Source: Podarcis pityusensis (taxonomy: Eukaryota). From it: a stretch of DNA of 64,000 bases. Numbering within the stretch: the stretch's first letter is position 1; each line of letters begins with the position of its first letter. The translations under genes and the position numbers were made by a program. Positions 15,701-60,500 of the stretch are shown here, in pieces. A model generated the notes under the pieces. It did not search any database, was not told the origin of the DNA, and was given only the letters and a program-made list of their open reading frames with translations. The DNA lies in the NCBI GenBank assembly GCA_964106645.2, contig OZ067048.1; one strand, given 5' to 3'.

Positions 15701-18700
15701 CAGTTCACGGTCCCTCAGATACTGTTGGGGGGAGGGCTATAGTTTGAAAAAAATATGAATGAATTCCTATGCACACTGCACATATTTTATTTGTGGTGCA
15801 CAAAAAACAGGAAAAACTATACATTATTTAAAATGAAGAATGATTTTAATCAACATAAACTTATAAGTATTTCAATGGGAAGTATGGGCCTGCTTTTTGC
15901 CAGTATATGAGAACATCGCAGCTGCAGACAGCCAGCTTGTTGACATCACAAGATGCGGCTAGCTGTGGGAAAGAAGATTCCCGGAAGTTCACAGGCTTCT
16001 CAGAGCTCTGTGAAGAGTGTAATTTGAGACCTTCCGTTTGCGTATGTACAGGAAGTTTGTTGGACTTGCTGGATGAAGTTTGAAGTGGTCGGACATGATT
16101 TCTGTAGTGCTGTAATGTCAGAAATAAACATCATGTAAATAGATTTCTGACTACTCTTCTTTCCCTGCTAGGGAAGCAGGAGGAGGGGGTGTGCATTTAC
16201 CCACGCTGGGAAAATGTCGCCTATCAAAATCTCCCTGGTCTGTCCGGGAATTCAGCCAGAGGAGGTTACCGGTAAACGAGCTCCGAGAGCAGTGAGAGGG
16301 GCCAGCCTCTCCGGAGGGGGTTTGTAAACCAACACTTTTGGCTAATGAGATGGTCGTTAGATGGATATCTATATAAGGGAATGCGCAGCGCCGGATATCG
16401 CATCGACAGAGATGCAGAAAATTGAGTCTGCTCAGACGCAGAAAATGATCCAACCCACGGTGGGGGCTCTGAGGCAGTGAACCAACCCAGGCAAGGTAAG
16501 CCTTGCCAGCTCCTGGCCTAGAGCGAGTAAGGGAGCGCTGAACAGGGAGGAGGGCCGAGGAGACCCTCACACCCTTTCCCCCGCCTCCTCTGTGCTAGGG
16601 GTGGTGGTGGTGCTGCCGCCCTCCGAGGCCATAGACCCGTTAAGACAGTGGTGGATTCTGTAACTCCCGGGTTGGGCCGGGTTCAGGACCCTGGCAGCGA
16701 GATCTGGCCCGCAAACCATAGTTTGAGGACCCCTGCTTTATAAGTGCATGAAGTGTTATCCTAAATTGGCAGGAATATACACATACACGTGTAATATATA
16801 TATAGAGAGAGGAAAAATGTAAGCAGTGAAATCAGGGGGAAATGAAATGTGAAAAATATTGACAGTGACAATTATGTTAAAGTGGATGTAAAACCATTAC
16901 AGTGATGTATTTTTGTTAAACAATTATAGGCCGTTCACACATCAGCGTTGATGACAGCACACACATCCTGACATTGGCAAGCTAATTGTCACTTGTAGTG
17001 GGATAATTACATGTTATCTCAATTCTGGTGACTGAAGTGCTACCCTATTAAGAATGTTATTTCACCTGTCACCTGAAATAAGGTAGCAGCTTTTATCTCA
17101 AATTAGCTTGCCAATGCCAGGATGCTTAGTTGCTCAAGAGGGACGTGTCCTTTATCAGTCTCCCAGCCCTGAAACTCATGCTGCCCCCATGCCCCACCCC
17201 ATATACATGAATAGCAGTATATGACTTGTGGTCCAGGGTGTCTGGAGTTATGGACAAGAATCTTTTCAGGTGATTGTTGCTGGTTTGACTTATTTCCAAT
17301 AATAATAATAGTTCTATAATCTTCAGCGAGCAATCAACATTGATTTTAAGAAACATTTTAGTATTATAAAAACTGGAATGTTAATACTCACAACTTTCAG
17401 TTCTGGGTGGGTAACATTTACAGACAGAAATTCCATAAAATTTGCAAATCCTTCATTGAGCCAGAGATCATTCCACCATTCCATGGTGACTAGATTTCCA
17501 AACCACTGCAAGAGAAAACATCTGATAGCAGAGATTTTCAACTGTTTTAAATTAATCCTCTGGTGCCTTCATTACACTGAAGAATCCACTGACTAGCGCA
17601 GCTATCAAGTTCATGTAAAAAATTAGTGATAACTTACCTGGTGAGCAAGTTCATGGGCTATAACCAAGGTAATTCCAAGTCTACTTGACGCTGAGGATTT
17701 TTCAGGATCGTATAACAAAGCAGATTCCCTGTATGTAATCAATCCCCAATTTTCCATTGCACCAGACTGAAAATCGGGAATAGCTGCAAGGTCTGCAAAT
17801 ACATTTTGAAAAAGTTGTCCCTCATACCTACTCACTCCATTTATAAATTCACAAGTCAACTTTGAAAGTAAACATATACATAGGTAGGTTTCGTTTGCAT
17901 GTATGTGTAACTTAGATCAACATTTCTATCAAAAGTAAAGTAGCGAGTTTACCTTGCTTAGGCAGAGGATATGGAATGCTAAAATATCCCTCATAGAAGT
18001 CTAACAGTTTTACTGCTGCATCCAAGGCATAATCCAGTTGGTTGATCACATGTGGTACAGCATATACTGAAACCTAAAATCATCACCAACAACAAAACAC
18101 AAACATTGATGAATTCTGAACTCCAACTTAAGAAAATATAAAAGATAATTAATTTGTTAACACCTTAAAATGAGAGTAAAGTTGAAATGTATCCAACATT
18201 TGATTTAGCTTTTCCTACCTTCTGTGCATAGGTAAACTCCTGTAAAAACCAATGGCAGAGGATATGTTTCTTAGGAAGACATAGTCCTGATCCATTCACT
18301 TCCGGGGTGGCGCCACCGGCAATGGCGGACTCCCTCTGAATTGGAGGGACTAGCTCTGCATGAAACGGGTCTTTCCGCTGCGGCGTAGCGGGGACCCTTC
18401 TGGAAATCACAGGCAGATGAAGCCTGTGACCGTGGGACTCGACGGGCACCCTTAGCGCCCCCCCAACCCACAAAGGAACCCACAAACGGGCTCCGAAGTG
18501 AAGAGGGGGAAGTGGCGCAGTGCTGTGAGTCAATTGCTTTTTCTGCGGAGCGAAGCCGCATAGTCGTTGCCGGAGAGCGCTGCCTTTTTCCTGGGACAAT
18601 TTGGCATTTAAAACAACCAACCGTGAGTACTGGAACATTGAATATTTGGACTTCAAATAAGAACTGGCGAAATAAAAAGGAATCTGGACTTAAAAATTAA

Positions 18701-21700
18701 CCCTAATTTGGTACTGAAATGGGAAGGTTTAAACAGGAAGTCACCCTCCCGTTTCCTCGTAGTCAGAACAAAGCAAAGACAACGCAAATTAGAGCCTTAA
18801 AAATCACTTTTAAAGGATCAACTTTCATCATTTAAAATCGCTGAACCCCCCCTTCGGTAGCAGGGGAAGAAGGGGGACCTTTTCTGAGCTGCTTAAACCT
18901 GCAGAAGTGAATCTAAAGCAAAGTAATTTTCCACCGTCCTGACCCTGGAGCGGGGTGTCAGAATTGACGTTTGAAACTCATTGACCAGAAACAAATGTCT
19001 TTTGACAGATAGTTAAAAGAAGAGAAACATTGTGACTCCATTGTTTCCCTTCGTCTTTTAAAAGAACAAATATGGACAAAATATCTTAAAAAAGAAACTT
19101 TGTTGCTATTGTTTTCAAGAAAAAGAACAACCAGAAGTTTTTCCCCCTAGTGGGGAACTGTGAAATTGTAACTAATTCCTGGGAACTTGCAGCTGTCACT
19201 GATTACAACTGTGGGAAAGGATTTGTGACCTTGTAGGACAATGTCTTCAGAAGCACTGTTGGGTGCTTTCTGTAAAATAAATGCCCTATTGGATCAGTTA
19301 AGTCAGAAGACGGATTTCATGACTAATGCGGCCAGAACCTTTGAACAGGTAGTGGGAAACTATATGGAGCCCACCCAGGAATCAAAACAGGAGCGTGCCA
19401 TGACAGAACAACTGAAAGAAGAGGACCTTGCTGAATCTTGGGCGCCAGAGACGGAGGGAGTTGCGGCCCAGCAGGAATATAAACTCTTGGATTTGATAAA
19501 TGAACTTGGAAAAAATCAGACTTGGAAAGATAAAATCTGGTTTGGTTTGGAAATGGGGGGTTGGATAGACCCCCCTTTACAGGGAGATTTGGACTTTTCA
19601 AGTCTGGAAAGGGGCCGCCAGATGTTTGGAGCTGTGGGGGCTCTCAACTTTGAAGGGAATCTGGAGCATGCTTGTAAATACTACATCGAGCTATGGAAAA
19701 GGGATCGTCTTGCTGAAAAGGGTCAAAAACACTACCAAGCCGGAGTTCCCACGAATAAAAGGGAAATATAAAGAAGATGTACGAAAGGGACATGGAAGAG
19801 ACTTGAGGGCCTCGGATATAAGATTGCCAGGTTAATGTGCTAGATTAATAGGATAAAAAGGACTGACAAAACCCGGGACCAGGAGGAAGGGACATTGGAT
19901 GAAGACTGGATTGCTTTTTTCTTTTCTTTTTATCATTAGGACTGTTTTATAAAATTGATGAATGTTAGGAAAATGTTGAAATGAAACTATTTGGCTCTTA
20001 TAAAAATGTCTAAAGAACTAGGTAAGAATGTTATGGTTTAGGAGAAGTTGGTAAAAATTAAGATTTAAGTTTTAAACTTTAAGGTTTTGTATAAGATAAG
20101 ATGAAAATAGATCAAGGTAATGTGATGACAGAATACTATGAATTATGGAAAGGATTTGCTGTGATTATTATAAAACAGGATACAGGAAAAGGGAGGAGGA
20201 GGAGGTCAAGGAAAGAAGGTATTGAAAGTGGAGAATTGGAGAATGATGGTTTTATTTTTATTTTTATTTTTCTCTTTTCTTTTTCTTTTTCCTTTTCTGT
20301 CTTGTTTTTTCCTTTGTGTAATTCTTTAAAAAAAACAACTCTTTTTTCAATAAATATCATTTTTTTTTAAAAAGAGTCCTGATCCATTCAAATTAAAGGA
20401 CTCCGAAGGTGGATCTTAATTTAGCAAAAAATACACTAACAATGGCAGTGAAAGTATCTATATCTTATATAACCTTTTTAACCTTGTCAAACCCTGGAAT
20501 CAAGAAAATTTTATTTTGTGGAGGTTGCTTGTGGAGATTCTGACTAAGGATCAGGCAGAACTTTCTGACGGTAAGAGCTGTTCAACAGTGGAATGGTCTC
20601 CCTCGGGAGGTGATGCTCTCTCCTTCCTTAGAGGTTTTTAAGCATAGGTTGGGTGGCTATCAACTGCAGAAAGTTGAGCTAGATGACCCTCAGGCATGGC
20701 CGTGGCCAAGTGGGGGCAGGGGAGCAGTTGGCTCCCCTAGATCAAGTAAAACAATAGAAATACTGACAAATCATATTGGTTCTAACCTGCCCCCCAAGTC
20801 CTGCCCCCCTAACAAAGTCATGCCACTCCCTAACAAAATTCTTGTCTATGCCCATGCCCTCAGGGCACTTTCCAAATTAACAATTCCATGATTCTATAGG
20901 GAAGAGCTACTGTGGTGGGTAGAGAGTTGAATTTGGATAGGGACCAAGTTCAAATGTTTGCTTAGAAATGAAGTACACAGGATTACCCTGGGGCAGTGGC
21001 TGTATGTATCTCATACTAAGCTACCTCATGGTGTTTTAGCGCAGATAAACTGAAAGTCTAACTAGGAAAGATGAAGTGCCCTGTGACTGCCTTTATTATT
21101 ATTTTTTAATTTAAAGGCACATTATCTCATTATCCAGATGCTCAGTCTTTTTTGCAACTGCATGTACTCAAGCTTTTTAATTTTTATCCCAGCAGTTTAG
21201 AAAATTAAGCATTACTGGTACACATTTCTACCAACAAATGTAAACAGCTGTGCAATGGCTGCTATCCATATAACTGATGCTTAACAAATGGAGCACGACC
21301 ACTGCAAGTCTAAACTTTTGCTTCTTATAGCATTGTAATAGACGTTTTGAGAACTACTGAAAAAATATTTCAAATTCTATAGGGTTGGATCCAAAGTTAG
21401 TCACAACCAATTTAAGCACCATTGATTTCAATGGATCTACTCTAAGTATGACTAAGTCTAGCTCTAACCCATAATAATTTCTTTAAAACCTTTCCAGGCT
21501 CTAATTACTTTAAAAATTGAAACTGCTACAATTTTAAAATATCAATATGCAACACTTCAGTTGATAGGAAAAGTTTACCTTAATTCCACGGGAAGTCATC
21601 TTGGAAACGGATTTGAAATCTGAAACAATGAAGGCCACTAGGTAAGTGCTCATCTTTACACTGACATCAAAACGGTCTTCAATGAGCTGCCCTCCAATGT

Positions 21701-23192: not shown

Positions 23193-24329
23193 TTTCAGCT
23201 TCTTCAAGGCAACTGTATAATCTGGAAGCAGCAATCTCAGTGTCAGGTTGTTATTGTATCCAGTGACAAATCTAATAAAGAAACATTATTAAATTAATAG
23301 AAAAACCTTTTAAAACCTCTTTGACTACCACCTATGGCTTTCCCTATCAATGCAATCTTTTGTGTCAGAAAAACATCAACAGTGCAGAATTCCATGCACT
23401 TTGGATTTATAAAGTGGAGACTGAAGGAGCACTTCCATTGCATCATACATGTCTTATTCAACTGCTCTGATCTGCAGAACTTGCCCTTCTACAAATGCCA
23501 TGATGATGTCTGTTCTGCAAGTGCAAGGAACTGAACTTCTAGTGTGGTGGCACCTATACTTTGATACTCCCTGCCTATTGATAGTAGAGGCAGGTGCCTT
23601 TGCTACATTATTTCAGATGTCTACGGAAAACTTTTCATTTTAGCAAGCCTACCCAGATATGTAACTAGCACTGTGTATACCCCATACTGTACATTTAAGA
23701 AACAATACTGTAATGGAAAGCACCACTGCACCCCAAATTCTAAGAACTGTAGTTTGCTAAACTGCTGGGAATTGCAGCTTTGAGGGGTAAACAACAATTC
23801 CCAAGATTCTTTGGGGGAAGACATGGGCTATGAATTTGCTTTCAAAGTTTGGTGTGTGCACAGCCTAAGTCATCTTATGTTCGTTAAAAAAAAGTTTTTA
23901 CAGATTTTCACATAGACCACACAGAGCATTGTGATAATCTGTAAAACTTTCAAAATAAATAAAATATGCACAGCAGGTAGGTGCACAAGTCTAAGGCTTG
24001 TTTCTGCAGCCCCATATGCCAAGCACTCAGTCCCAGGGATACACATGGAACCCCTTGGGGCAGGCTAGAAGCCAGTAGTTCTTGGTCTGTCCTCATTTTA
24101 CTGCCAACTAATTCCACCAAAGCGAGCTGGACTTTTAGCACGATGGGGGGTGGGGTGGAGGAGAAGCAACTTTTCCTCAGCTCCAGGTAGAGTTTTAATT
24201 TTCGGCCATTTTTGTCGTTGCGGCTGCCTACTTATTCCACAGCTCAAGCACCTGAGCTTCCCCGCACCACCCCCTCAAGATTCCTGGGAACTGTAGTTTC
24301 AAGGTGCTGGGAAAACATGGCTCCCTGCG

Positions 24330-30188: not shown

Positions 30189-30811
30189 TTTTTTGTTTTT
30201 TTTAAATAATTTTTTATTATAGTTTTAAACAACAAAAAAAAGAAAAACAACACACACAAAAAACAATACAAGACTTAACAATATAAACACAAAACAATTA
30301 AAAACAAACTCTCTTTTCCATTTCCAATTTTAAGTTACTTATTTTCTGGACTTCCTCATACCTCCCTCTTTTGTATTCCAATCCACATTATTTGTCCAGC
30401 AGTTTCTTTTCCACTTTTTTAATCTCAATCTTTAATTTAATAAAATGTTATAATATATAACTTCAACTTTTTTTTTTTAAACCTAATCCTTTAATCTTAA
30501 TATCATATAACTTTAAAGTTTCCCCTTTTAAAATCAAATTTCCATTTCTTTAAACTTATTTAATCTTAATCTTTAATCTTAATCTATCCTTAACTTTAAC
30601 CTGTGCAGCTGGAAACCACTTGTTTTCAGTCCATCATCACTCTAACATTCCTTAATTTTGCAGTGTTTCTGAAGATAGTCTGTGAATTTCTTCCAGTCTT
30701 CCTCCATCGACTCTTCTCCCTGGTCTCGGATTCTGCCAGTCATTTCCGCCAATTCCATATAGTCCATAAATTTCATCTGCCATTCCTCCAGCGTGGGAAG
30801 TTCTTGTGTCT
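30189..30811 (-). mobile_element. 5'-truncated L1 (ORF2 C-terminus, 3' UTR and A-rich tail)
   Basis: 18-bp TSD CCCTCTGGACCTCTTTTG (30171-88, 30812-29). The - strand reads TQELPTLEEWQMKFMDYMELAEMTGRIRDQGEESMEEDWKKFTDYL, typical of non-mammalian L1 ORF2 ends. Confidence 0.85.
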
Positions 30812-31772: not shown

Positions 31773-34471
31773 ATGTTGTTGTTGTTGATAAGCCTATCAA
31801 GCTTATCTTGCTGTCCATGCCCTAAAAAAAGAGTATAAAGACCTAATATGCCACCAAAAGAATGCCTATACCAGAAAATGTTGGTTAGAATTAATTAGTG
31901 CGGCAAAAGCAAAAGATCAGACACTATTCTACAAACTGGTAGCTTCTGGCACCCATAAAGCTATTTCTTAACCTCACAAATTCTTAACCTCACAAATTCC
32001 CCCTAGCCTTTGGGTCTCATTCTTCCAATCTCTGTACGAGGATGCTGAACCTCCACTACGGAATTATAATATAGAACAACTGGCTAAATGGCCTCCAGTT
32101 TCAATAACTGAAGTGAAATCATATATAAACCAACTGAAAACGGCCAAAGCCCCAGGCTCAGACAGCATTACACCAGAAATGATAAAAGCACAGGCGGATT
32201 GGTGGGCACCTTTCTTAGCCAACCTCTTCACTTACATAGATGACACTGGCCGCATCCCAAAGGAATGGGGAACAGCCATAATAGTCCCAATCTATAAAAA
32301 GGGCAACAGAGGGGACCCAGCGAATTGTAGGCCGATTAGCTTATTAAGTGTGATTAGTAAACTCTACTCAAAGCACCTCCTTAATAAGTTTACAGAATGG
32401 CTAGAGAATGAAGATATCCTGGCAATAGAACAAGCGGGCTTCAGACCTGGAAGGTCCACGATAGATCACTGTCTAACGTTACAACATCTCATTGACAAAT
32501 ACAAATCAGGAGGGCAGGCCTCACTATACGCTGCCTTCGTTGACCTAAAAGCAGCCTTTGATACAGTCTCCAGAACCAGACTCTGGGACAGACTACAGGG
32601 TACCAATATAGATAGAAGGCTCCTGCTCCTAATTTAGGCACTGCACGCAAACACGGCCCTTAGAGTCAGGTGTAGCCGCCTAGGACACCTAACGGACCCA
32701 ATAAAAACCTTCAAAGGAGTCAGGCAAGGGTGCCTATTGGCCCCTCTACTATTTAATTTCTATCTAAATAACTTAGTATCTGCACTCAATGACTCAGAAC
32801 TCCACCCGCCGAAGCTTGCAAATCGGCATATTTCGGACCTGCTATATGCCGATGATGCGGTAATTCTATCTAGAACCCCATTGGACTCAAAAGAGCACTA
32901 AGAAAGCTCGCAGCATACTGCGAATCTGAACGTCTCAAAATCAACTATCAAAAGACCAAGATACTCGCTTTTGGGGAAAAACCAAAGCTTAGAAGCTGGG
33001 AACTCCAAGGCCATAAATTAGAACAAGCCACAAACTACAAGTATCTAGGAATGGTGGTACAGGCCTCAGGAACCAACAAACTACACATAAACTCCATTGG
33101 GAGTTCAGCGGGGGGAAACGCAAATTGTATCCTTAAATTCTTCAGAGCACAAGGGGGCTTCTTTGTCCCCGCAGCTCTAAAATTATACAAGGCCAAAACT
33201 TTGGCACAACTCCTCTATGGTTCCTTTTTGGGCCCGCCTTCCTCTGCTTTCTCCCCACTTGAGAGAGTTCAATCCAGACTTCTTAGAGCTCTCCTCCAAG
33301 TCCCCATATGTGTCTCAAACGCATGGGTTAGATTAGAAACGGGGATGATGAGAGTGGAGGCTAGCATCTGTCTAACATCAATTTACAAATGGCTGACATT
33401 GAACCTGCTCCCCCGAGGAATAGCCCCATTGATCCTCTGTGACCAATTCCAGTCGGGCTGGCAGACTGCAGTCTTGAACACCCTCCGGAAATTGGGTTTT
33501 GCCCCTCAAGCCCTTCTAAGTCTGGGCTTGGACCAGGCAAAAGCTATGGTCAGGCAAAGAATATTAGACACCGAGAGACAGCAGGACTGTGCAAGGTGCC
33601 CCAACTATAGAATTGGAGAAATCGAGAGATATATAGCCGCACCGGCACCATATCTCTTCTTTCTCGTATCCAGGGATGCAAGAAGGGCCTTTACACTCAC
33701 CAGAAGCTGGGCTCTTCCCTCGCCGGTCCTCGATGGAGCCTTTAGAAGGGTCCCGTATGCTCAGAGACTTTGCACCTGTCCTTTGGGAGAGATAGGAAGC
33801 CCAGAACACTTGCACTTTAGATGTCCCTTTTATAAAGAGGCACGTAGTAAGATCATGGATCCCCTACTGGTAAGGCTCGGCGACCTCCTGCAAAAGCAAA
33901 AATTTGACCTTTTGCTATTGGGCAAAGATCAGAAGATGACCTGGATGGTCACCAGATTCTGTCTACAGATCTGTAGGCGCAGACCATCGGCCAACTCAAA
34001 ATAGTCGGGCATGAAAAGCCCCAAACACGGTTCCATGGGTGATTCTGAGTCAACTCCCTGGGACAGTTTATTGTTGTACATTGTTTCTAAATTTAGTGTT
34101 GTATATTGTTTTAATTGTCTGTTTTAACCATATTTGCACAGCAGTTTTTAACGTTGTGAGTGTCCTCTATTTAAGAGGCTTCTACTCTGCAGCCTCTTAT
34201 AGTTGTTTTATCTGCGAGTCTTTTAGTTCTTATGCTCTTGCAGCTGTTTTAACTGCGTGTCTTTGTTGGTTTTTAGCTCTTATCTGTTTTAATTATTAGT
34301 TTTTTATCCATTATCTGTGTTTAATTTTGTATTTTATTTGGATGTTTTATGCCTGTTTCCTTGTCCTCATTTGCCCTGACAATTATCGGTCAAAAATTCC
34401 TAACTGCTATTTTATCTATATGCCTTTTTAAATCCTGGTCTGTGACCGTAATAAAGTTCATTCATTCATTC
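31773..34471 (+). mobile_element. 5'-truncated RTE-X-like LINE (RT plus C-terminal zinc knuckle), inactivated
   Basis: RT motifs IVPIYKKG..RPISLL, QAGFR, FVDLKAAFD, GVRQG, YADD (~32845); stop at 32635-37 and frameshift ~32880; C-x-C..H..C knuckle in ORF 33051-34004; AATAAA plus (TTCA)n tail; TSD agtcgtttagt/agttgtttagt. Clade assignment is inferred. Confidence 0.85.
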
Positions 34472-36955: not shown

Positions 36956-38285
36956 TGTTGTTGTTGTTTAGTCATTTAGTCGTGTCCGACTCTTTGTGAC
37001 CCCCATGGACCAGAGCACGCCAGGCACTTCTGTCTTCCACTGCCTCCCGCAATTTAGTCAAACTCATGCTGGTAGCTTCGAGAACACTATCCAACCATCT
37101 CATCCTCTGTCATCCCCTTCTCCTTGTGCCTTCCATCTTTCCCAACATCAGGGTCTTTTCCAGGGAGTCTTCTCTTCTCATGAGGTGGCCAAAGTATTGG
37201 AGTCTCAGCTTCACGATCTGTCCTTCCAGTGAGCACTCAGGGCTGATTTCCTTAAGAATGGATAGGTTTGATCTTCTTGCAGTCCATGGGACTCTCAAGA
37301 GTCTCCTCCAGCACCATAATTCAAAAACATCAATTCTTCAGCGATCAGCCTTCTTTATGGTCCAGCTCTCACTTCCATACATCACTACTGGGAAAACCAT
37401 AGCTTTTATTATATGGACCTTTGTTGGCAAGGTGATGTCTCTACTTTTTAAGATGCTGCCTAGGTTTGTCATTGCTTTTCTCCCAAGAAGCAGGCGTCTT
37501 TTAATTTTGTGGCTGCTGTCAGCATCTGCAGTGATCATGGAGCCCAAGAAAGTAAAATCTCTCACTGCCTCCATTTCTTTCCCTTCTATTTGCCAGGAGG
37601 TGATGGGACCAGTGGCCATGATCTTCGTTTTTTTGATGTTGAGCTTCAGACCATATTTTGCACTCTCCTCTTTCACCCTCAATAAAAGGTTCTTTAATTC
37701 CTCCTCACTTTCTGCCATCAAGGTTGTGTCATCTGCATATCTGAGGTTGTTGATATTTCTTCCGGCAATCTTAATTCTGGCTAGGGATTCATCCAGCCCA
37801 GCCTTTCGCATGATGAATTCTGCATATAAGTTAAATAAGCAGGGAGAAAATATACAGCCTTGTCGTACTCCTTTCCCAATTTTGAACCAATCAGTTGTTC
37901 CATATCCAGTTCTAACTGTAGCTTCTTGTCCCACATAGAGATTTCTCAGGAGACAGATGAGGTGATCAGGCACTTCCATTTCTTTAAGAACTTGCCATAG
38001 TTTGCTGTGGTCGACACAGTCAAAGGCTTTTGCATAGTCAATGAAGCAGAAGTAGATGTCTTTCTGGAACTCTCTGGCTTTCTCCATAATCCAGCGCATG
38101 TTTGCAATTTGGTCTCTGGTTCCTCTGCCTCTTCTAAATCCAGCTTGCACTTCTGGGAGTTCTCGGTCCACATACTGCTTGAGCCTTCCTTGTAGAATTT
38201 TAAGCATAACCTTGCTAGCGTGTGAAATGAGTGCAATTGTGCGGCAGTTGGAGCATTCTTTGGCAATGCCCTTCTTTGGGATTGG
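36956..38285 (-). mobile_element. BovB (RTE) LINE, 5'-truncated, with RT domain
   Basis: ORF 37338-38336: RTIALISHASKVMLKILQ, FIDYAKAFDCVDH, KGVRQGC, NLRYADDTTLMAESEEELK; premature TGA at 37338; (CAA)n tail; 12-bp TSD GATGGTAAATTT (36944-55, 38286-97). Confidence 0.95.
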
Positions 38286-38319
38286 GATGGTAAATTTAGC
38301 TATTTGCAAACAGACGCAC

Positions 38320-38535
38320 CAGACCATAAGACGCACCTAGTTTTTGGAGGAGGAAAACAAGAAAAAAAATATTCTGAATCCCAGAAGCCAGAACAGCAAG
38401 AGGGATCACTGCGCAGCGATCCCTTTTGCTGTTCTGGCTTCTGGGATAGCTGCGCAGCCTGCATTCGCTCCACACACATTTCCCCTTACTTTTTAGGAGG
38501 GAAAAAGTGAGTCTTATAGAGCAAAAAATACGGTA
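38320..38535. mobile_element. Partial Tc1/mariner-type MITE
   Basis: ataagacgcacc ... gtcttatagagcaaaaaatacgg|ta terminus. Confidence 0.6.
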
Positions 38536-50355: not shown

Positions 50356-51518
50356 TATTACATTTCTATAGGATCCTTCATCTAAGGATCACAGGGCAGT
50401 TTACAATATAAAAACAGATAGACAGATAGATAGACAGACAGATAGATAGATAGATAGATAGATAGAACAGACAGTACTCCTTTGCTTTGGTATAGTTCTT
50501 AGTTGCTTGTACATAAGAATGTTCCTCAAGCATTCGTCTCAGACATGTCAAGGTTTCATTTATGGAGCATGTTATTGCATTTTTAACCACTGGCACCTGC
50601 AGCAGGTCCTTTTCCTGAGACTGGAGATACTATAGTAAGACCATACAAATGTCCTCCAAAGTGTCCTAAAATCCTTTTCCTTAAATGATATAGATTAGGA
50701 AGAAATGGGCTACTGGGCCAATGCCACTTTGGTTCAATTCACATGGTCTCTTATCCTGGGATATTTTATCTTGCGTCTTATTAACCCCCTCCGTTGGATG
50801 GCTTCTTCTTCTTCTTCTTCTTCTTCTTCTTCTTCTTCTTCTTCTTCTTCTTCATTTTGTTGCATTTATATATAGCTTTTCTGACGAGGCACCCAAGGCA
50901 GTTTACAATTTTAAATGACTAAAACACAGGGTCCCAACTCCATGATTTTTTAAAATGATACAACATTTGTTTGGTAGAAGGAAGGAGCCGGGCTCTGATG
51001 TTGCCTGTGCCTTCCTGCTCCCTCATCTTTCTTCCTCCTAACAGTGCAGGTGGTGTCTTTCAGCCCTGTAGGCCTTGTGAATCATGATTGTGTTTTAAAG
51101 AATTCATATGTTATAGCAAGCGTCATTCAGGTAGCAGAGTATATTGGCATTTAAATTCTTTGCTTGCTTCTAAGCCACAGCACTTGAATAGGGAAAGGAG
51201 ACACATAATCTGCTCTGCCAAAGCTTACTCTTGTTCTGGCAGAACAGGAAATATAAGTATTTTTGTTTCAGAGGGTAATCACATATTATGTTTGGGTTTT
51301 TTTCTTACTCAGTTACATCTGTGTTGTATCCATTTCTGCTATTTCTCCCCGTTAAAAAAACACACCACATCTCAGTGCCCTTCCATCTGGGCTCTATTCA
51401 AACCTCTTCCATTGTTTAAAACCACCATGTTCCTTTCAGTGTCTTTTCATCTTTGCTTTACTCAAACTTCTCCCTTTTTTTTTTTAAACCACCACTTTCC
51501 CTATCTCAGTGGGGAAGT

Positions 51519-51562
<44 letters not shown>

Positions 51563-54500
51563 ACACCCCCACCCCCTTCTTATCCCCCACCAATGCCTTC
51601 CATTAACCTGCCCCCACAAGTCATTTACTGTACTACAGACATGAGTTTCCTCCTTTTTCTTCCTGCTTCTTCCTCCTTCCCCTGCCTATAGAATCATAGA
51701 AACAGACGGAAGACAAAGTAGTGTAAATGCAGTATAGACAGAAAAATCATTATCAGTGAGATGCAAATGTATTCTGGTCTCTAGTCAAGATTTATCTTCT
51801 TCTCAGTACTGCCTTGTTATGTTGACTGAATCTCAGGGGCCTGAGGAGAAACCTCTAGTTTCTGGCTGACTCATAAAACCATTTAAATACATGATTCCTT
51901 ATAACTTTTTTGTAAACGTGCATTGTGTTTGCTAGCACCCAATCAGTCACAGAAATGGATGAAATTATTTGTTAGTAAGCTATTACTTGACACCAGTAGT
52001 ATCACCATACGAAACTGAATTTGCCAGAGATAAAATTGAGAGAATGGAATGGCTAAAGTCGGTTAGCTTAAAACCATAAAGCAATATCCTTTGTATATTA
52101 CACCTGCAATGTAACCAAAAGATCCGAGAGATAATGGTTATGTATTGTGTTCTATAGGTGCTAAAAAGCGAGCAATTTCTGAGCTCTGGACTCAGCACTG
52201 TGCCTAAGATTTCAGATTAAAATCTCCACTCCTGACACTGAGGGTGTGGGAGGAGAAATTCCTGCCTGCTCGACTTCCAAGAAATCACAGCATCAGGCAA
52301 GCTGATAGGTTCTGCCTCTCAGCTGGCCTTACAGAAAGGCACCGTTTGGAGGGACCCTCATAAGAATATTAAGGGATCTTTGTAGTCTTAAAATGACTAG
52401 ACCATGTGAAAAATGAATGTAAGATTTTAGCTGCAATTCATTAATTTTCAGCTTTGTGTTCTTGTTATAAAAAAGTGTGCCTAGACATTCCATTGTTGCG
52501 CCCATAACCTAGGTTTAAGGTGCCATTTAGCTCCTAGCTTTCATTGCTCAGTTTCTAACACTGGTTATGTGGTTGTCGTATCAGATTTAGGGATGTGTTT
52601 ATACTTAGCCTTTCCCCCTTCCAGGCAAGCTGATTACGCTTTAATGAGTATATTGGAAGGATGTGATAAGAGCATGCAACTAAACTAATTTTAATTACTA
52701 ATTTTTTTAAAGATGCTTTGGAAGAAAGAATTAGAAATAAACTAGGATTGGTATAGGATTGAATGAGAATGAGCATAGCATTTTGGCCATTTTCCACTAC
52801 ATTAGTAGTTTTTATTTCTATTGACACTTTCTGATGGAATATTAAGGTCAGCCAGGTTAAGAATGCAGAAGGCCATAATCCAAATCTCATTTGTTAAGAC
52901 CCTTATCTGCTCTGCTGACATTCGTATGCTACTCTGTTTTGGCTTACCCGGCCGGATGTGTACTAGTATTAGCACCACACTATTGAAGAGAGGCTATAAT
53001 CATATGATAACTCTACGGTGGAATAAAATACCCCCCACAGATTCAAACAATTATTACATTACAGTCAAATACTGACAGAGAGATGGATTGCATACAGGAA
53101 AACAACAGGTAATTCTCCAAGGGTAAAGGGGACTCTAGTCTGCTGATTAAACCTTTTATAGAAACACATGAATAACAGGGTGAATTAATTTAAACAATTG
53201 ATTTAAGTTGCCAAGGGGGCGAAAGACCAATTTAAGTTTAATGTTGTAAATACACAGCTATATGATGGGAGTTGATCAGATGGGTCCCAACCATGGAAGT
53301 GGTAGTCTGCTGCATGTGTGTGTTGATTCTTTGGAAAGACCCATGTGATTGGCCCCCATCATGTTATTAAAAAATGGCTGCCAGACTGCTAGTGCAATCC
53401 TTAAAGGAACCACCAATGGAAGATATTGTGGAAAACAAGCAGTTTGTCCTTCAGCACCATTTTTGTGGGTGTGCCTCTTAAAAACTTTGTTTTGGGTTTC
53501 CTTTTTGACAAGCGTGCAGAAAAGTTGGAATGTGCAAGTTCCTTTTGGAGTCTTATGAAGTCCAGTTTATAAAGAGACCTGGATTCCAAATTGATTTCTA
53601 AGATTTCCTGAGTGCAGAGGAAAGATAAAGAGAGGGGGAGGATTTTTGACAAGTGCAGCCTTTGGAGAAGTTCTGATTGTACCCTCTGTGTCCCATTTGT
53701 TTCAATGAGATAGGGCTTTTGATTTTGCCTTCTTGCTAGGTTTTTAGGTTGAATTCCTAAGGATTGTGTTGCTCAACGTATCTCAACAATTTTGTTCTTT
53801 AGAATTTAGTCAAGTGTTTCTGAAATTCTTGCTGTTTACATTATATTTGGCTACTTATATTTGGGAATTGATAACCCATTTCTTCCCTCCATCACCAAGG
53901 AGGAACAAGTTCATTGAAATAATATGGCTTCTCCTGTCTTCCTTATATTCCTGTAATACCTCACAATTCCACCATTAACTATATGTTCATGGAGTTGTTT
54001 CCTAGCGAGAGCAATGAGCAGTGTAAATAATTTTAAGTGACCCTGAAAGGGATGGAAAGAGCTATGCTTTCATTTTAGAGGAAAAGAGTTGAGTAGGATT
54101 TGTAATCATTTGTTCCTTTCACTGGTTAAAATGTTGAAATAGTGAAAACTATTTTTAAAGCGCATTAGACTAAAGATGCGGAAAACATGGCCTATGCAGA
54201 TGTCAGCTGTGGGTAGTTCTCTAGGTAAACGAAAGTGGTACAACAATACAGGATGCAACTAACTTCTTTTTTTTAAAAAATAATATTTATTAGTAGTTTT
54301 CAGAATTATAAGAAGAAAAACATTTTAAAAAATTTAAAAAACAACACTATAATAGACAAAAAAAGAAAAAACACGAAAATCAATACAACAATACAACAAA
54401 AAGATAAAAAGAAAAAAGAAAACAACACAAATCCCAACTTACATATCTAAAACTTCCATTTGCTTGTTTCATTTACTTCCTCACACCTCCTTTTTTGTAT

Positions 54501-57500
54501 TCTAGTTTAATTAGTTATTTCAGCAAATTCTTTCCATCTTTCTCAATTTTTATTAAAAAATTCATCCTAGCCTAATTTAATCTAATAATTAACTCAACAA
54601 ATCCTTTCCATCTTTCCCCATATTCTATTGTTCACATTACCTTAATTAATTTAACCTTATCTTACCCTAAAACGCCTTAAAGCTTGAATCTTAGTTATCA
54701 AATATACATTACTCCTGATATCATTTCTGCTAAAGTCATATAGTTTCATTCCAACATTTTCCCTAATATTCATTAATTTTTAGCCAATTCCCCAATTAGA
54801 AAATTTTCTTTATAATTTTTCTTCCAATCTTCATCCAACGTCCCTTCTTCCTGGTCTTGGATCGTGTCAGTCCTTACTGTCCATTCCATCTAGTCCATCA
54901 ACCTGGAAGCCTTATGTCCGAGGCCCTTAAGTCTCTTCCATGTCCCTTCTGCAATTTTTCTTCTTCTTGTTTATACTTGCCCTTTTCCTTGTCTTTTCTT
55001 GGTCTCTTTCTTAGTTTCTTTCCTTTCTCATTGAGGGGTAGGCCTCTGGGGGCTTCCAAGCCGGAATTGTCTCCATCTCCCTTCATCAAACCCGCCCATT
55101 CCCCACAGTCCCACTCCCCACAATCCTCAATATAGTCAAAAAAGTATTTAAAAGCATATTCCAAGGTTTCTCCAACGTTGGGAACCTCCTCAACTCCAGA
55201 CTCCCCCTGGCCCACTCCAACTTCAATCTTCAATGACAGCAGCTCATACTCCTGTAGGGCCTCGGGACTCTCCATTTGTATTATTTGGGGTGCAACCGCA
55301 TCCTCCTCCATTATCTTCTGCACTTGCCCAGTCAGTACAGATTCATGAGTTGGTCCCTGGATAATTTCTATATCAATATTCCCTGTTTGCCCACAGTTAT
55401 TAACTGCAACAGTCAAATCCATTTTCTCATTCATCAAGTCCATCTTCTCATGCATCTGTTCCAGCAGGGCACTTGTCTTACATAAGGCAAGCACCCAGTC
55501 TTCTTTCCAACTCATCTTTAGTCAAGGTCAGAAAAGCCTGTTCCCACGGTCTTAATCTCACATCTGTTGAGCCCTCAAGTGTACTGCAGCAACAATTTGA
55601 CAAGCTCCCTCTAGAGGAGGCAACAGATATTTTTCAGATATTTTGTTTCTTTAGGATGCAAAAGGCAACATTGGAATCAGCTTGTTTCTCTTCTTTAGCT
55701 ATCTGTCAAAATATCCCATTCACAGTCAATGAACCTCTCCAACAATTTCTGTCTCTGACACCCCGTTCCCAGGTTAGAGACGGTGGAAACTTATCCTTCT
55801 TCACTCCCTCTCCTGCTAGGGTTGAACAAAGTTCCCCCCCTTTTCTCCTGCTTCCAAGGGGGTTTCAGTAATTCTAAATGAAGAAAATTTAGACTTTTTT
55901 GACAGCTTTCCAGGCTTTAGCTTACAAAGTTTTTGCTTTAGTCTATATACAAAAAGCGGAAGGCAGACTTCCTGTTTTGAACCTTCCCGCTTCGTTACCA
56001 AATTAAGAAATTTCTTGATCCAATTTTCCGTTTCTACTCACGGGTACTTATTTTAAATCCAATTGTCCACAGGAAAAAGTCAGCGCTCTCCGGCAATGGC
56101 TGTGCGGCTTCACTCCGTGAAAGTAGCAGTCAGTTTGCAGCACCGCGCTTCTCACCCCACTTCACTCCGGAGCCCCTAAATGGGATTCCCTGCGAGTAGG
56201 GGGGCACTCCTGGTGCCCTGCCGAACCCCACGTTCCCAGGCTTCCTCCGCCTGGGATTTCTAGCGGGTCCCCACCTTCGCCGTGGCGGGAAGATCCAGTT
56301 TCCACGGAGCCCGTTCCTCCGGACGGAGGAACTCCGCCATTCACCGATGGCGCTGACCTGGAAGTCGGGCCAGGATGCAACTAACTTCTTACATCTACTC
56401 TCAGTTTTCAGGAACCATGAAAATGTGGGTGAGTCAGTTGCAAGTAATTAAATATACAGCTTTAACCACACAGCTTACAGAGTAGCCGTGAACTTGTTAA
56501 CTTTAAATATGAAAGACGTGGTCTTTCAATTCACATATGACATGTGTAACTTTTACTTTATGGCACATCAGAGTTGGAGTTTTGATGTTGCAGACAGTCT
56601 CTATTGATCCCCCCCCTCCCAGTTCATGTTCATAAGTTAATATATGAAAAGTTTCTCTTAAACTGGTGCAAGGTAACCATCTGCCGGGTATTTCAGCAGA
56701 ACAAGTTGTTCAGCATACCTTTCTCTGCAAAGGACTTGAACCAAAATTGCCTGAAGGGTTTTGTTGCAAATCTTTATAAATAAGCCCAGGTGAGAAACTC
56801 TTAAAACAGATGTAAAGTTTCAGAAGCTGCTGTTACTGCAGAAATATGTGGGCATTTCACAGTTCTCCAGTTTTTATCATTTACAGAATCTTACAGCAAC
56901 AAAGGATCTAGAAAAACCTGATCAGATTCCCTGTTCGCATGCAACACAGGTCAATATTAACTAAAGTATAGGAATTTGGACACCAATTAATGTATAGCCC
57001 TTTTGCTTCAGCTAGATGCATGTTCTACCCCATTTCTCCCCTCCTTTAATGCACATAGATGAGAGATGGTATGGTGAGCATTTGCTACTCAGTGTCCTAC
57101 CGCTTTTAATATTGATTTAAATGCCTACTATCTTTTAAATGGAGGGACGCGGGTGGCGCTGTGGGTTAAACCACAGAGCCTAGGACTTGCCAATCAGAAG
57201 GTCGGCGGTTCAAATCTCCGCAACAGGGTGAGTTCCCGTTGCTGGGTCCCTGCTCCTGCCAACCTAGCAGTTCGGAAGCATGTCAAAGTGCAAGTAGATA
57301 AATAGGTATCGCTCCGGCGGGAAGGTAAACGGCGTTTCCGTGTGCTGCTCTGGTTCACCAGAAGTGGCTTGGTCATGCTGGCCACATGACCTGGAAGCTG
57401 TACGCCGGCTCCCTCAGCCAATAAAGCGAGATGTGCACCACAACCCCAGAGTCGGTCACGACTGGACCTAACGGTCAGGGGTCCCTTTACTGTCTTTTAA

Positions 57501-60500
57501 ATGGGTCTTAATATTCTACCAGTCATTGCCAATGGGTTGGGGGAAAGAAGTGCTATGAAAACATCTGTGATACAGCTACCATAATAGCAGCAATTGTACT
57601 GTGCCTTCACCAAACTAGTGTCCTCCATATGTTTTGGACTACAATTTAAATATTTTTTCTTGGTTTTACTGTTTTATCATTTGTACATCACTTTGAGGTT
57701 TGTTTTCTTTTGGTTTGTTTTACATTCAAGCGGTGTATAAATTTTTGTTAAATAAATAAAGCAATTCCGATCAGCTTCAGGCAGCTAGCTTGGGAAGTAC
57801 AATTTTCTGCAGCAAAACAATTTGCATAATAATGAAAATAGCGCTGGTTATACTTGGCAAGTTATTGGCATAATGTTGCTTGCTAATGCTTTCTTCCTTT
57901 TTTAATGATTTTGCTTTGAAGGGTAGGGTGGGGGAGAATTTTATTATTGGACTCAAATGGTCTTTATTGAAGCTTTGCTTTTAAAAAAAGTCAGGTGAGG
58001 TTTTATATGACATAGTTGTTATAAGGTTGTGTGCCGCCTCAATTGCCTTTGAGCATAGAAAGGCAAGAAAGATGAATAAATGTAAATGTGAACCATAGTT
58101 TGGGAAAGTCTTTAACCAAATGCATGATGATGATGATGATCTCAATGATTTAGTTGTGGTGCGTGTTTTGTTCTGGAAAAAGTCACAGATAGACGCCAGT
58201 GTTATGCTGACTTTGTCGGTCTGACTTGGTAAAAATCCTTATGCATGAACTAACGGAGGAACTTCAATCCTCCTTGGAGGTTTTCGATAAAAGATTGAGC
58301 AGGAATCTTGTCACAGATGCTCAGAGCACAGGCTATTCTGTATTGCATGATTTCCATTTCATAGCTTGCTCTGAACTGCTGCTTGTCCAGATTTAAAACA
58401 GTTAGTATTACATTAATACTCTTTGCAAAAGTCTAAATCTATTGCATTTTAATTAAGGCATTTCTAATACAGTGTTTGGTGGTGAAAGTGTAGCATAAAA
58501 CTGTTATATGTGGTACAGGTTTCATGTAAGAACACATTGTGGTGTTGGTAGTTTCATTCAGGTGCCCTTTGTGTAAGAGCCCCTTGCCAAGTAGATAGCC
58601 CCAATTTCCATACTGTCATGGCACATTGTTGGCTACAGCCTGCAAAGAAATGGACTCATCCACTTGTTAAGCAACTTTTGCTAATTAAATCTTCTGCATT
58701 GTTGTCCCTGCATGAACACATGTCCACTGTGTTCCTTCATGGGTACCATAATGAGAGACACAACCATCCACATACATGCAAACTATGCTTGAAAAGCCCC
58801 AAAGCCCCAACCACCCAACAATTCAAACAGCTGATAAGCTTCATTTGTGTTTCAGATCGAATTCCCTTACCTAGGAATATGATTGAAAACAGCATGTTTG
58901 AAGAAGAACCTGATGTGGTTGATCTGGCTAAAGAGCCTTGCTTGCATCCCTTGGAGCCTGACGAAGTGGAGTATGAGCCAAGGAGTTCTCGGCTCCTTGT
59001 CCGTGGTCTTGGAGATCACGAAATGGATGAGGATGAAGAGGACTATGAATCATCAGCCAAACTTCTGGGAATGTCTTTTATGAATAGAAGCACAGGCCTG
59101 CGTGGTAACACAGTGGGCTACAGGCAGAGTTCAGATGGATCATGTTCTGCACCATCTGTAAGGACCACAGTGATTTGTGCTGTTGTTCTTGTGATTGCTG
59201 TCTCCGTAATAATGGCAATCTACCTTCTTCCCAAATGTACCTTTACCAAAGAAGGCTGTCATAAGCAAAACCACACAATGGACGATATATATCCTTTGGC
59301 AACAAACGGAAAGCCCTTTCCATGGGCAAATTTCAGGCTACCAGGTGCTGTTGTGCCAGTACATTATGATATTGTCTTGCAGCCAAACTTAACCACTATG
59401 AAGTTTTGGGGTTCAGTCCAGATAACTGTGAAAGTCCTCCAGGTGACCTGGCATATCATTCTTCACAGCTCAAAACTTAATATTACCAAGGTAACTCTTT
59501 CTTCATCAGGCTCAAGCCAGCCAAAGCAAGCCGAGCTTCGGGAATATCCACTGAATGACCAGATTGCAATTTTTGCCCCCGAGGCTCTCCTTGTAGGACA
59601 ACAATATAACATCAACATGGAGTATTCCTCTAATTTATCAGAAAGTTACTCTGGCTTTTACCGAATCGCTTATAACAATGACAACAGAAATTCAACAAAA
59701 AGGTAAAATTGGGAAATAATGTATTTCTACCTTATTTGTAATACATTATGGGAGTTGAAGTACAGCAGTATCTGGAAGCTTACAGGATTCTCACTCATAA
59801 TTTAAGGAACCTGCCACCTCCTCCTTTAATTTTTTCAAGTGATCTACATGCAGTGTAGTGCCCAAGATGAAATTATAAACCTGGTTCAAATCTCTTTGTT
59901 GCCATAAACCTAGTAGATAGATTTGGGCAAGATACATTCAATTTTAGACCATGTGCAACATGGAGATGATAACATTGCTTTCCTTAACTGGATTGCTCTA
60001 AGAATTACTGAGAGTGTATGCAAAGTGTTTTGAATATTCAAGGCACTCCATAAAATGTTAAGTATGTGTTGAAAAGTTCAAGCATTCTGAACAAGGAAAA
60101 CTTATTTTGTAATCTTTTGATGTTGCAGTTGTTGACTGTGCCTTTGGGTCTGGGAATTAAACCTGCTAAAGTGTTCTTCAGGAGTGAAAAGGAAAGTGTT
60201 CATCCTCTCCACTAGTTTTTGTTCCTTTAGGTAGAATGCAGGCATATATATAGACTGTAAACTAAGTTTGGTTTTTGTTATCAAGCCTTGATCAAAACCA
60301 AATTCTAGAATTCAATCTAGAATTTTTGTTTCAAAGCCAGATCTTTGTGTAGCTTAATCCGTTAGGATACAGCAGATCTTTTGCAAGGTACATTAAGCTA
60401 GGGCTAGTATAAGGAACTTAAAAGGTACAGTGGTAGACAACTCCTTAGAGCTTGTTTACAGGTGGCCTGAGAAACTATTTTTAAGATTCATATGCAATTA

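Follow-up and report, generated by a model that had tools for sequence, protein, structure and literature searches.

A probable HAL1-like derivative of lacertid L1 with a reduced ORF1 protein

A 64,000-nucleotide (nt) stretch of contig OZ067048.1 from the lizard Podarcis pityusensis (assembly GCA_964106645.2), referred to here as the window, contains two retroposed elements, copy A on the plus strand and copy B on the minus strand. These very probably represent two subfamilies of a non-autonomous, HAL1 (half-L1)-like derivative of lacertid L1 that arose independently of its mammalian counterparts. HAL1 elements are non-autonomous L1 derivatives that encode only the ORF1 protein (ORF1p) and have several origins in mammals (Smit 1999; Bao and Jurka 2010; both as summarized in PMC5753468). 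The first-pass annotation of this sequence had proposed an L1-dependent, HAL1-like family with several subfamilies and a single open reading frame (ORF) of ~200 amino acids (aa), a proposal borne out by the L1 ends, the insertion marks, and the copies described below.

L1 ends and insertion marks of a multicopy family

Reading of the sequence confirmed that copies A and B (Table 1) are retroposed elements of ~2.1 kb with perfect target-site duplications (TSDs) of 16 and 20 nt, respectively, as initially described; the first two A residues of the 20-nt TSD are ambiguous with the A tail of copy B. Both copies end with AATAAA, a T-rich stretch, and an A tail of 5 to 8 nt. Neither the ORF listing nor Pfam revealed a reverse transcriptase or endonuclease domain, or any other long ORF, in the two copies, in agreement with the annotation. 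Their identity to each other is 67% in the 5' untranslated region (UTR; ~0.85 to 0.94 kb, blastn E 1e-51), 55% in the ORF, 69% in the first 150 nt 3' of the stop codon, and 57% in the remaining 3'UTR. By blastn, A and B alone match each other, and the 64-kb window holds no third copy.

The two copies and a genuine L1 have a common 5' start, CTTCCGG...GCGCCA.CGG..AATGGCGGA, which in copy B places ETS-like CTTCC and YY1-like ATGGCGG motifs at the beginning of the 5'UTR. We identified this L1 by using as a query an L1 ORF1 fragment that adjoins family-like sequence in Podarcis raffonei, which led to a 370-aa ORF1p of Podarcis lilfordi (P0010) and its locus, L008. Locus L008 carries ORF1 followed by an ORF2 with an Exo_endo_phos domain. 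Positions 1 to 683 of copies A and B are 68 to 69% identical to the 5'UTR of this element (E 1e-84 to 1e-91), which starts with the same CTTCCGGG...GGCGCCATCGG.AATGGCGGA. Because a genuine L1 starts alike, the ETS-like and YY1-like motifs, already noted at first pass, are L1's own promoter-proximal sequence. Copy B has 5 extra nt (GCCCG; window 56366-56370, minus strand) between its TSD and the canonical ACTTCC start; these may be an untemplated addition at the 5' junction or reflect an upstream start.

The 3' ends are likewise those of L1. The 5'-truncated 3' end of a genuine L1 lies in the same window, and it is 63% identical to positions 1470 to 2048 of copy B over 595 nt (E 4e-41). Homology of copy B to the L1 ORF2 end and 3'UTR starts exactly at the stop codon of copy B, and this is also seen with L1 sequence in loci L005 and L008. 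When we aligned positions 1100 to 1475 of copy B locally with L1 ORF2 C-terminal DNA, we found no ORF2 likeness 5' of the stop codon (z 0.9), so the tail of the half-L1 ORF is not ORF2 derived. The truncated window L1 and the ORF2 end of the L1 at P. lilfordi locus L008 share 89% identity, which indicates that it belongs to the same broad L1 group, not demonstrably to the partner lineage.

The ORF2-end remnant of copy B includes a purine-rich block that is kept between the half-L1 family and L1s. This block of ~60 nt, GACTG.CA...GACCAGG.AGAAG.G....TGGA.GAAGA.TGGAAG, lies within 54731-54900 (minus), 19833-19990 (plus), and 30600-30780 (minus). It is ~80% identical between genuine L1 ORF2 ends, in which it is coding, and all half-L1 subfamilies, in which it is untranslated and contains stops. 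RNAalifold applied to the conserved ORF2-end remnant gave −0.7 kcal/mol, with no covariation and no conserved structure.

We searched for relatives of the half-L1 protein in two ways. A word-indexed search of 5.8 billion proteins returned only four relatives, three of them "hypothetical proteins" of P. lilfordi. When 1.8 billion representative proteins were searched in full with an HMMER profile of the half-L1 family, six proteins were listed (P0002, P0005-P0007, P0008, and P0009), of which P0005-P0007 are three further family members, P0009 is a partial P. lilfordi model, and P0008 is an L1 ORF1-containing model; from this listing, the family is therefore confined to lacertid-type data. P0006 and P0007 are more distant members on long tree branches. 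At the DNA level, P. lilfordi carries a full-length A-type copy of ~2.09 kb that is 86% identical to copy A (L002), a full-length B-type copy of 2.16 kb whose 5'UTR is 91% identical to that of copy B (L003), and a 5'-truncated B-type copy (L001). Each of the three has its own TSD of 14 to 15 nt, at the target sites TT|AAAAG, TT|AAAT, and CC|AAAAG. TT|AAAA-like sites are of the kind preferred by the L1 endonuclease.

All full-length copies start at the same (A)CTTCCGG, and the four of them (A, B, L002, and L003) are 2.08 to 2.16 kb long. Both A-type and B-type subfamilies occur in the P. pityusensis window and in P. lilfordi. Together, these copies constitute a multicopy, subfamily-structured family with its own lineage, L1 ends, and L1-type insertion marks. 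It combines the HAL1-like characters of an L1 5' end, an L1 3' end, an ORF1-type protein without ORF2, and multiple copies with common junctions.

We rejected the alternative, raised at first pass, that the elements are one-off internal deletions of L1 with a ratio of nonsynonymous to synonymous substitution rates (dN/dS) near 1: shared junctions are found in several copies, in different subfamilies, and in more than one species, and the ratio of nonsynonymous to synonymous differences (pN/pS) is 0.3 to 0.45. SpIREs, spliced or internally deleted L1 copies, are retrotransposed by target-primed reverse transcription and form dead-end single insertions (PMC5860796). They resemble half-L1 in deriving from L1 RNA that lacks an internal segment and in their mode of insertion, and an event of this type could plausibly have produced the founding half-L1 deletion; unlike SpIREs, however, the half-L1 deletion gave rise to a subfamily-structured lineage.

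Copies derived by retroposition from the mRNAs of a host gene family, such as a domesticated ORF1 gene comparable to L1TD1, would likewise have TSDs, a poly(A) signal, and one ORF subject to purifying selection, and gene callers do list half-L1 copies as hypothetical proteins. Against such an origin, the first nucleotides and 0.7 kb of the 5'UTR are those of a true L1, the 3' 0.6 kb consists of the ORF2 end and 3'UTR, and no intron-bearing parent was seen; moreover, there are several independent insertions with different TSDs, one of them 5' truncated and two within one 64-kb window. With L1 ends on both sides and several independent insertions, we rejected the host retrogene, which we regard as highly improbable. 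In lacertid annotations, the half-L1 ORFs now listed as hypothetical proteins should instead be masked as repeats.

Relationship of the half-L1 protein to L1 ORF1p

To compare the protein with ORF1p, as the annotation had suggested for the 205-aa ORF, we aligned a profile of eight half-L1 family members with lacertid L1 ORF1 proteins by hhalign. Against one L1 ORF1, the family matched with a probability of 97.3% (E 1.7e-11) over aa 1 to 100. Against a profile of 16 lacertid L1 ORF1 proteins, the probability was 98.6% (E 1.1e-15) over 216 columns, placing aa 4 to 195 of the copy B protein on aa 59 to 326 of ORF1p. Pairwise tblastn and blastp matches to the C-terminal domain (CTD), all in frame, agree with the profile alignment, and the 16-sequence profile in turn matches the solved L1 ORF1p, 2ldy. 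By these alignments, the ~200-aa protein derives from lacertid L1 ORF1p, with which it is collinear but shorter, and we rejected an orphan protein on the same profile match. The first-pass suggestion of a possible new class, with a protein of no assignable origin, is thus not supported. The first-pass statement that no recognizable ORF1 RNA recognition motif (RRM) is present holds insofar as no complete RRM is found, but the ORF aligns with ORF1p, and remnants of the RRM are visible in A-type members.

Domain searches were less informative. Pfam scans of the A and B ORFs gave no match, but the genuine 370-aa lizard ORF1p P0010 also has no Transposase_22 match, and the blank result is therefore uninformative. 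A profile search of the PDB with the half-L1 family gave 0 matches, and a search of the ESM Atlas gave no usable match.

The alignment shows what was lost. The family start corresponds to a Met internal to ORF1p, so that the N-terminal ~55 residues are gone. In an AlphaFold2 (AF2) control prediction of a true ORF1p made with the 16-sequence alignment, a confident helix spans residues 58 to 165 and is followed by the RRM (β1, 168-174; α1, 182-194; β2, 205-211; β3, 221-227; α2, 230-242; β4, 253-256). Placed on this control, the segment that all family members lack, ORF1p residues 216 to 254, is β3-α2-β4. A-type members keep a degenerate 33-aa β1-α1-β2 remnant; B-type members lack it and have lost nearly the whole RRM. 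No half-L1 member has the complete β1-α1-β2-β3-α2-β4 order. The CTD is still alignable (e.g., D-Y-G..A-D-L-L-K-R...L-E-F-P-R versus N-Y-G-D-L-V-A-L-L-R...W-E-F-P-Q), with most ORF1p-invariant residues changed, and neither a conserved CTD nor a basic, RNA-binding character is found in half-L1 proteins, which are acidic (isoelectric point [pI] 4.7 to 6.0, versus 8.4 for true ORF1p).

The beginning of the coiled coil is homologous to that of ORF1p, with a heptad pattern at aa ~11 to 39, and only the first four to five heptads are kept. All members have a Pro (E-P-T-Q-E) at a point where the helix of ORF1p runs on unbroken, and the coil is shortened by it. Identity of half-L1 to any sampled ORF1p coil is 25 to 40%. 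At the other end, a C-terminal tail of 14 to 17 aa is conserved even among members with ~30% overall identity. In the protein of copy B, a pruned ORF1p, the coiled coil is short, the RRM is absent, the CTD is degenerate, and the conserved tail is present; by direct reading, an in-frame stop lies 9 nt 5' of its ORF start. Compared with canonical L1 ORF1p (P0010 and P0014-P0029; 2ldy), half-L1 proteins are collinear over ORF1p aa 59 to 326 and share the coil-start Met, the N-terminal heptads, two CTD stretches (E-F-P and K-G-K-K), and an ...E-D/K-L-Q-K-G motif. They differ in length (~200 versus 340 to 370 aa), in the Pro within the coil, in charge, in having no complete RRM, in the changed CTD residues, and in the new conserved C-terminal tail.

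The annotation had also held that the A and B ORFs align end to end. This is correct only if the frame is switched in copy A, where an 11-nt deletion immediately 3' of position 19690 disrupts the ORF, as judged against the intact A-type copy L002. Because of this deletion, frame 1 runs only to a stop at 19771 (176 aa), and the frame of 19626-19835 encodes the conserved C-terminal tail.

We placed 8 family proteins and 18 ORF1 proteins in an unrooted maximum-likelihood tree. In this tree, the half-L1 family forms one side of a bipartition against all ORF1p, with support of 100/99, and the nearest ORF1 is the P. raffonei protein encoded next to family-like UTR sequence. We found no sign of descent from a mammalian L1 or HAL1 ORF1; the family is closest to lacertid L1 ORF1 proteins and 5'UTRs, and the half-L1 origin is therefore independent of mammalian HAL1. 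The common internal start, RRM deletion, ORF1-to-ORF2-end junction, and tail argue for a single founding deletion, in which case the 33-aa loss in the B-type would be secondary.

Like mammalian HAL1, the lizard family has L1 ends, an ORF1-type protein without ORF2, multicopy lineages of its own, and presumed mobilization by L1 ORF2p. It differs in its separate lacertid origin, in an incomplete ORF1 that lacks the N-terminal 55 aa and RRM β3-α2-β4, in the absence of nearly all of the RRM from B-type members, and in having an acidic rather than basic protein. To our knowledge, half-L1 elements have been described only for mammals in the literature that we searched, and there with a complete ORF1p. 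HAL1-like elements of squamates were not described in this full-text literature, Repbase and Dfam being outside the scope of the search, and it is quite possible that the lizard element has been cataloged before as an unnamed repeat model.

Three further database entries contain parts of lizard L1 ORF1p. Two Podarcis muralis gene models named "TRIM39-like" (P0012 and P0013; 454 and 422 aa) consist of a TRIM RING, a B-box, and a coiled-coil start that continue in frame into an intact stretch of L1 ORF1p that runs from the mid-coiled coil through the RRM and CTD to the C terminus and is 76% identical to P0010 aa 170 to 370. They represent either a TRIM-ORF1p fusion, with a TRIMCyp-like logic and a possible role as an L1 restriction factor, or an annotation artifact from an L1 inside a TRIM gene. 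The third entry, RefSeq model XP_053229072.1 of P. raffonei (LOC128406054, 340 aa; L005 8001-9693, CM049768.1), is a spliced chimera of an L1 ORF1 N terminus and an ORF2 fragment located within a nest of retroelement insertions, and it is most likely an annotation artifact.

Selection on the ORF and possible roles of its product

We examined codon alignments of seven members by an NG86-type count method, using four within-type pairs with a synonymous divergence (dS) of 0.31 to 0.46. Across the four pairs, pN/pS lies between 0.29 and 0.45 (one-sided binomial test, P from 6e-8 to 6e-4), with constraint on the coiled-coil part of the ORF as well as on its middle part. Changes in the 17 tail codons are mostly synonymous, with 6 synonymous changes and 1 nonsynonymous change between L002 and L004. 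These codon comparisons indicate that the half-L1 ORF is under purifying selection. The 5'UTRs contain 3 to 6 ATGs, compared with ~16 expected (copy B has 4), and the start codon has A at −3; this depletion and the A at −3 would fit translation by scanning.

Several observations count against a family of active elements with a selected protein. The pN/pS comparison drew on members that gene callers had recognized as intact ORFs, and the NG86-type estimate ignores CpG and transition bias. An AF2 monomer of the copy B ORF reached a pLDDT of only 41, with a helix at 3 to 42 alone. A complex prediction with three copies of B aa 1 to 100 scored 0.15, where 0.32 is the mark for an answer, and speaks neither for nor against a trimer. 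The copies counted are two in 64 kb plus three in P. lilfordi loci. Finally, the closest L1 of the window, only 63% like the 3' end of copy B, is not evidently of the partner lineage.

One alternative is that the half-L1 elements are real but that the ORF is a functionless relic, open through youth or through the sampling of open copies. The gutted RRM, the loss of most invariant CTD residues, the sparse fold in the AF2 model, and the frameshift already present in copy A would all suit a relic, as would the finding that, between subfamilies, ORF identity is 52 to 57% while that of the UTRs is 66 to 72%. Greater divergence of the ORF than of the UTRs is a pattern known for L1 ORF1 coiled coils. 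A functionless ORF, however, sits poorly with the pN/pS values in coil and middle alike, with the mostly synonymous changes in the tail, with the depletion of 5'UTR ATGs, and with four lineages (~30% aa identity) that keep the start, the frame, and a stop after the conserved 14- to 17-aa tail. On balance, we judge a relic improbable.

We favor a selected protein within the HAL1-like derivative proposed above, with the following probable history and life cycle. A deletion in the ancestor began close to the ORF1 end and reached into ORF2, sparing only its last ~55 codons, and it is because of this deletion that half-L1 has no endonuclease or reverse transcriptase. What remained was the L1 5'UTR, including the internal promoter, together with a reduced ORF1 and ~0.6 kb from the 3' end of L1. 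Transcription would start from the L1-type internal promoter, and the RNA would be translated by scanning into an acidic protein of ~200 aa that retains only the first four to five coil heptads and a CTD remnant. ORF2p from complete L1s would then act in trans and copy the RNA into A-rich nicks by target-primed reverse transcription. We infer this mobilization in trans from the TSDs of 14 to 20 nt, the A tails, the 5' truncation, and the TT|AAAA-like sites.

As the protein is under selection and yet is acidic and lacks the RRM, it most likely works in cis through protein-protein contacts, helping to build or route the ribonucleoprotein particle (RNP) of the element, and not as an RNA chaperone. 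In human cells, truncated ORF1 proteins from defective L1 loci influence L1 in trans by way of the coiled coil (Sokolowski et al. 2017, PMC5605252); because they do, a protein-protein role that joins or diverts L1 assemblies is a fair hypothesis. The human fragments resemble the half-L1 protein in that the N-terminal or coiled-coil part persists while the RNA-binding domains are incomplete, but they are accidental, unselected products of dead L1s, whereas the half-L1 protein would be the conserved, selected product of a propagating element. At first pass, an ORF1p mimic or modulator of L1 RNPs had been raised as a possibility, on which the homotrimer prediction does not bear either way.

Two more specific versions of a protein-protein role seem to us rather unlikely, if well short of negligible. 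The pruned ORF1p might be an interaction module that joins ORF1p trimers of the partner L1 via the coil start and either steals RNP parts for its own RNA or acts as a dominant negative on L1. Its first ~40 residues keep their heptads and form the best-conserved match to ORF1p, and an acidic protein without an RNA-binding domain is unlikely to have a direct role on RNA. The family-wide Pro, however, shortens the coil where ORF1p has a continuous helix, and identity to sampled ORF1p coils is low. The complex prediction, which fell below its mark, covered the homotrimer only. The other version, on which we would place about as little weight, makes the ORF1 remnant a selected adaptor or decoy that, through the coil start and the tail, enters ORF1p assemblies of co-resident L1s and diverts ORF2p or RNPs to half-L1 RNA or damps L1. 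If true, a parasite of a parasite would here be armed at the protein level; nothing of the kind is suggested by mammalian HAL1, whose ORF1p is complete.

The lizard half-L1 is informative about which parts of ORF1p a non-autonomous L1 parasite cannot lose, namely, the coil start, a CTD remnant, and a new tail. Its protein has been pared down to ~200 aa, is acidic, and lacks the RRM, yet it is under purifying selection in several deeply diverged subfamilies. The family also provides a natural system for asking how ORF1p functions beyond RNA binding and how cis-preference is bypassed.

Coordinates and other sequences of the window

Table 1. Positions of the half-L1 copies and of a truncated L1 in the window
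Feature	Position	Strand	Remarks
Copy B, full-length B-type half-L1 element	54269..56370	-	2102 nt
Copy B 5' TSD	56371..56390	-	20 nt
Copy B 3' TSD	54249..54268	-	20 nt
Copy B 5'UTR	55516..56370	-	855 nt; 69% to L008 7055-7751 (true L1 5'UTR)
Copy B intact ORF	54898..55515	-	205 aa; pI 4.75
Copy B remnant of last ~55 L1 ORF2 codons	54731..54900	-	untranslated; from ORF stop codon on
Copy B L1-type 3'UTR	54269..54730	-	AATAAA at 54286-54291; 8-nt A tail
Copy A, full-length A-type half-L1 element	18299..20374	+	2076 nt
Copy A 5' TSD	18283..18298	+	16 nt, perfect
Copy A 3' TSD	20375..20390	+	16 nt, perfect
Copy A 5'UTR	18299..19240	+	942 nt; 68% identity to L1 5'UTR in L008
Copy A ORF1-derived ORF, broken	19241..19835	+	11-nt deletion just after 19690
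Copy A remnant of L1 ORF2 3' end	19833..19990	+	untranslated
Genuine L1, 5'-truncated 3' end	30189..30811	-	623 nt; last ORF2 codons and 3'UTR
TSDs of the truncated L1	30171-30188, 30812-30829		18 nt, perfect

Other retroelement debris in the window comprises two RVT_1 reverse transcriptase fragments and an ORF with a weak CCHC zinc knuckle (37338-38336, minus; 32113-32637, plus; 51088-51606, plus). Two long ORFs, 33051-34004 and 37066-37938, gave no Pfam match. Two further ORFs in opposite orientation, 22704-23234 (minus) and 58618-59706 (plus), contain a Peptidase_M1 N-terminal domain (E 1e-20 and 3e-22) and are probably exons of two aminopeptidase-N-like paralogues. Each lies near a half-L1 copy, with copy A ~2.3 kb from the former and copy B ~2.2 kb from the latter.

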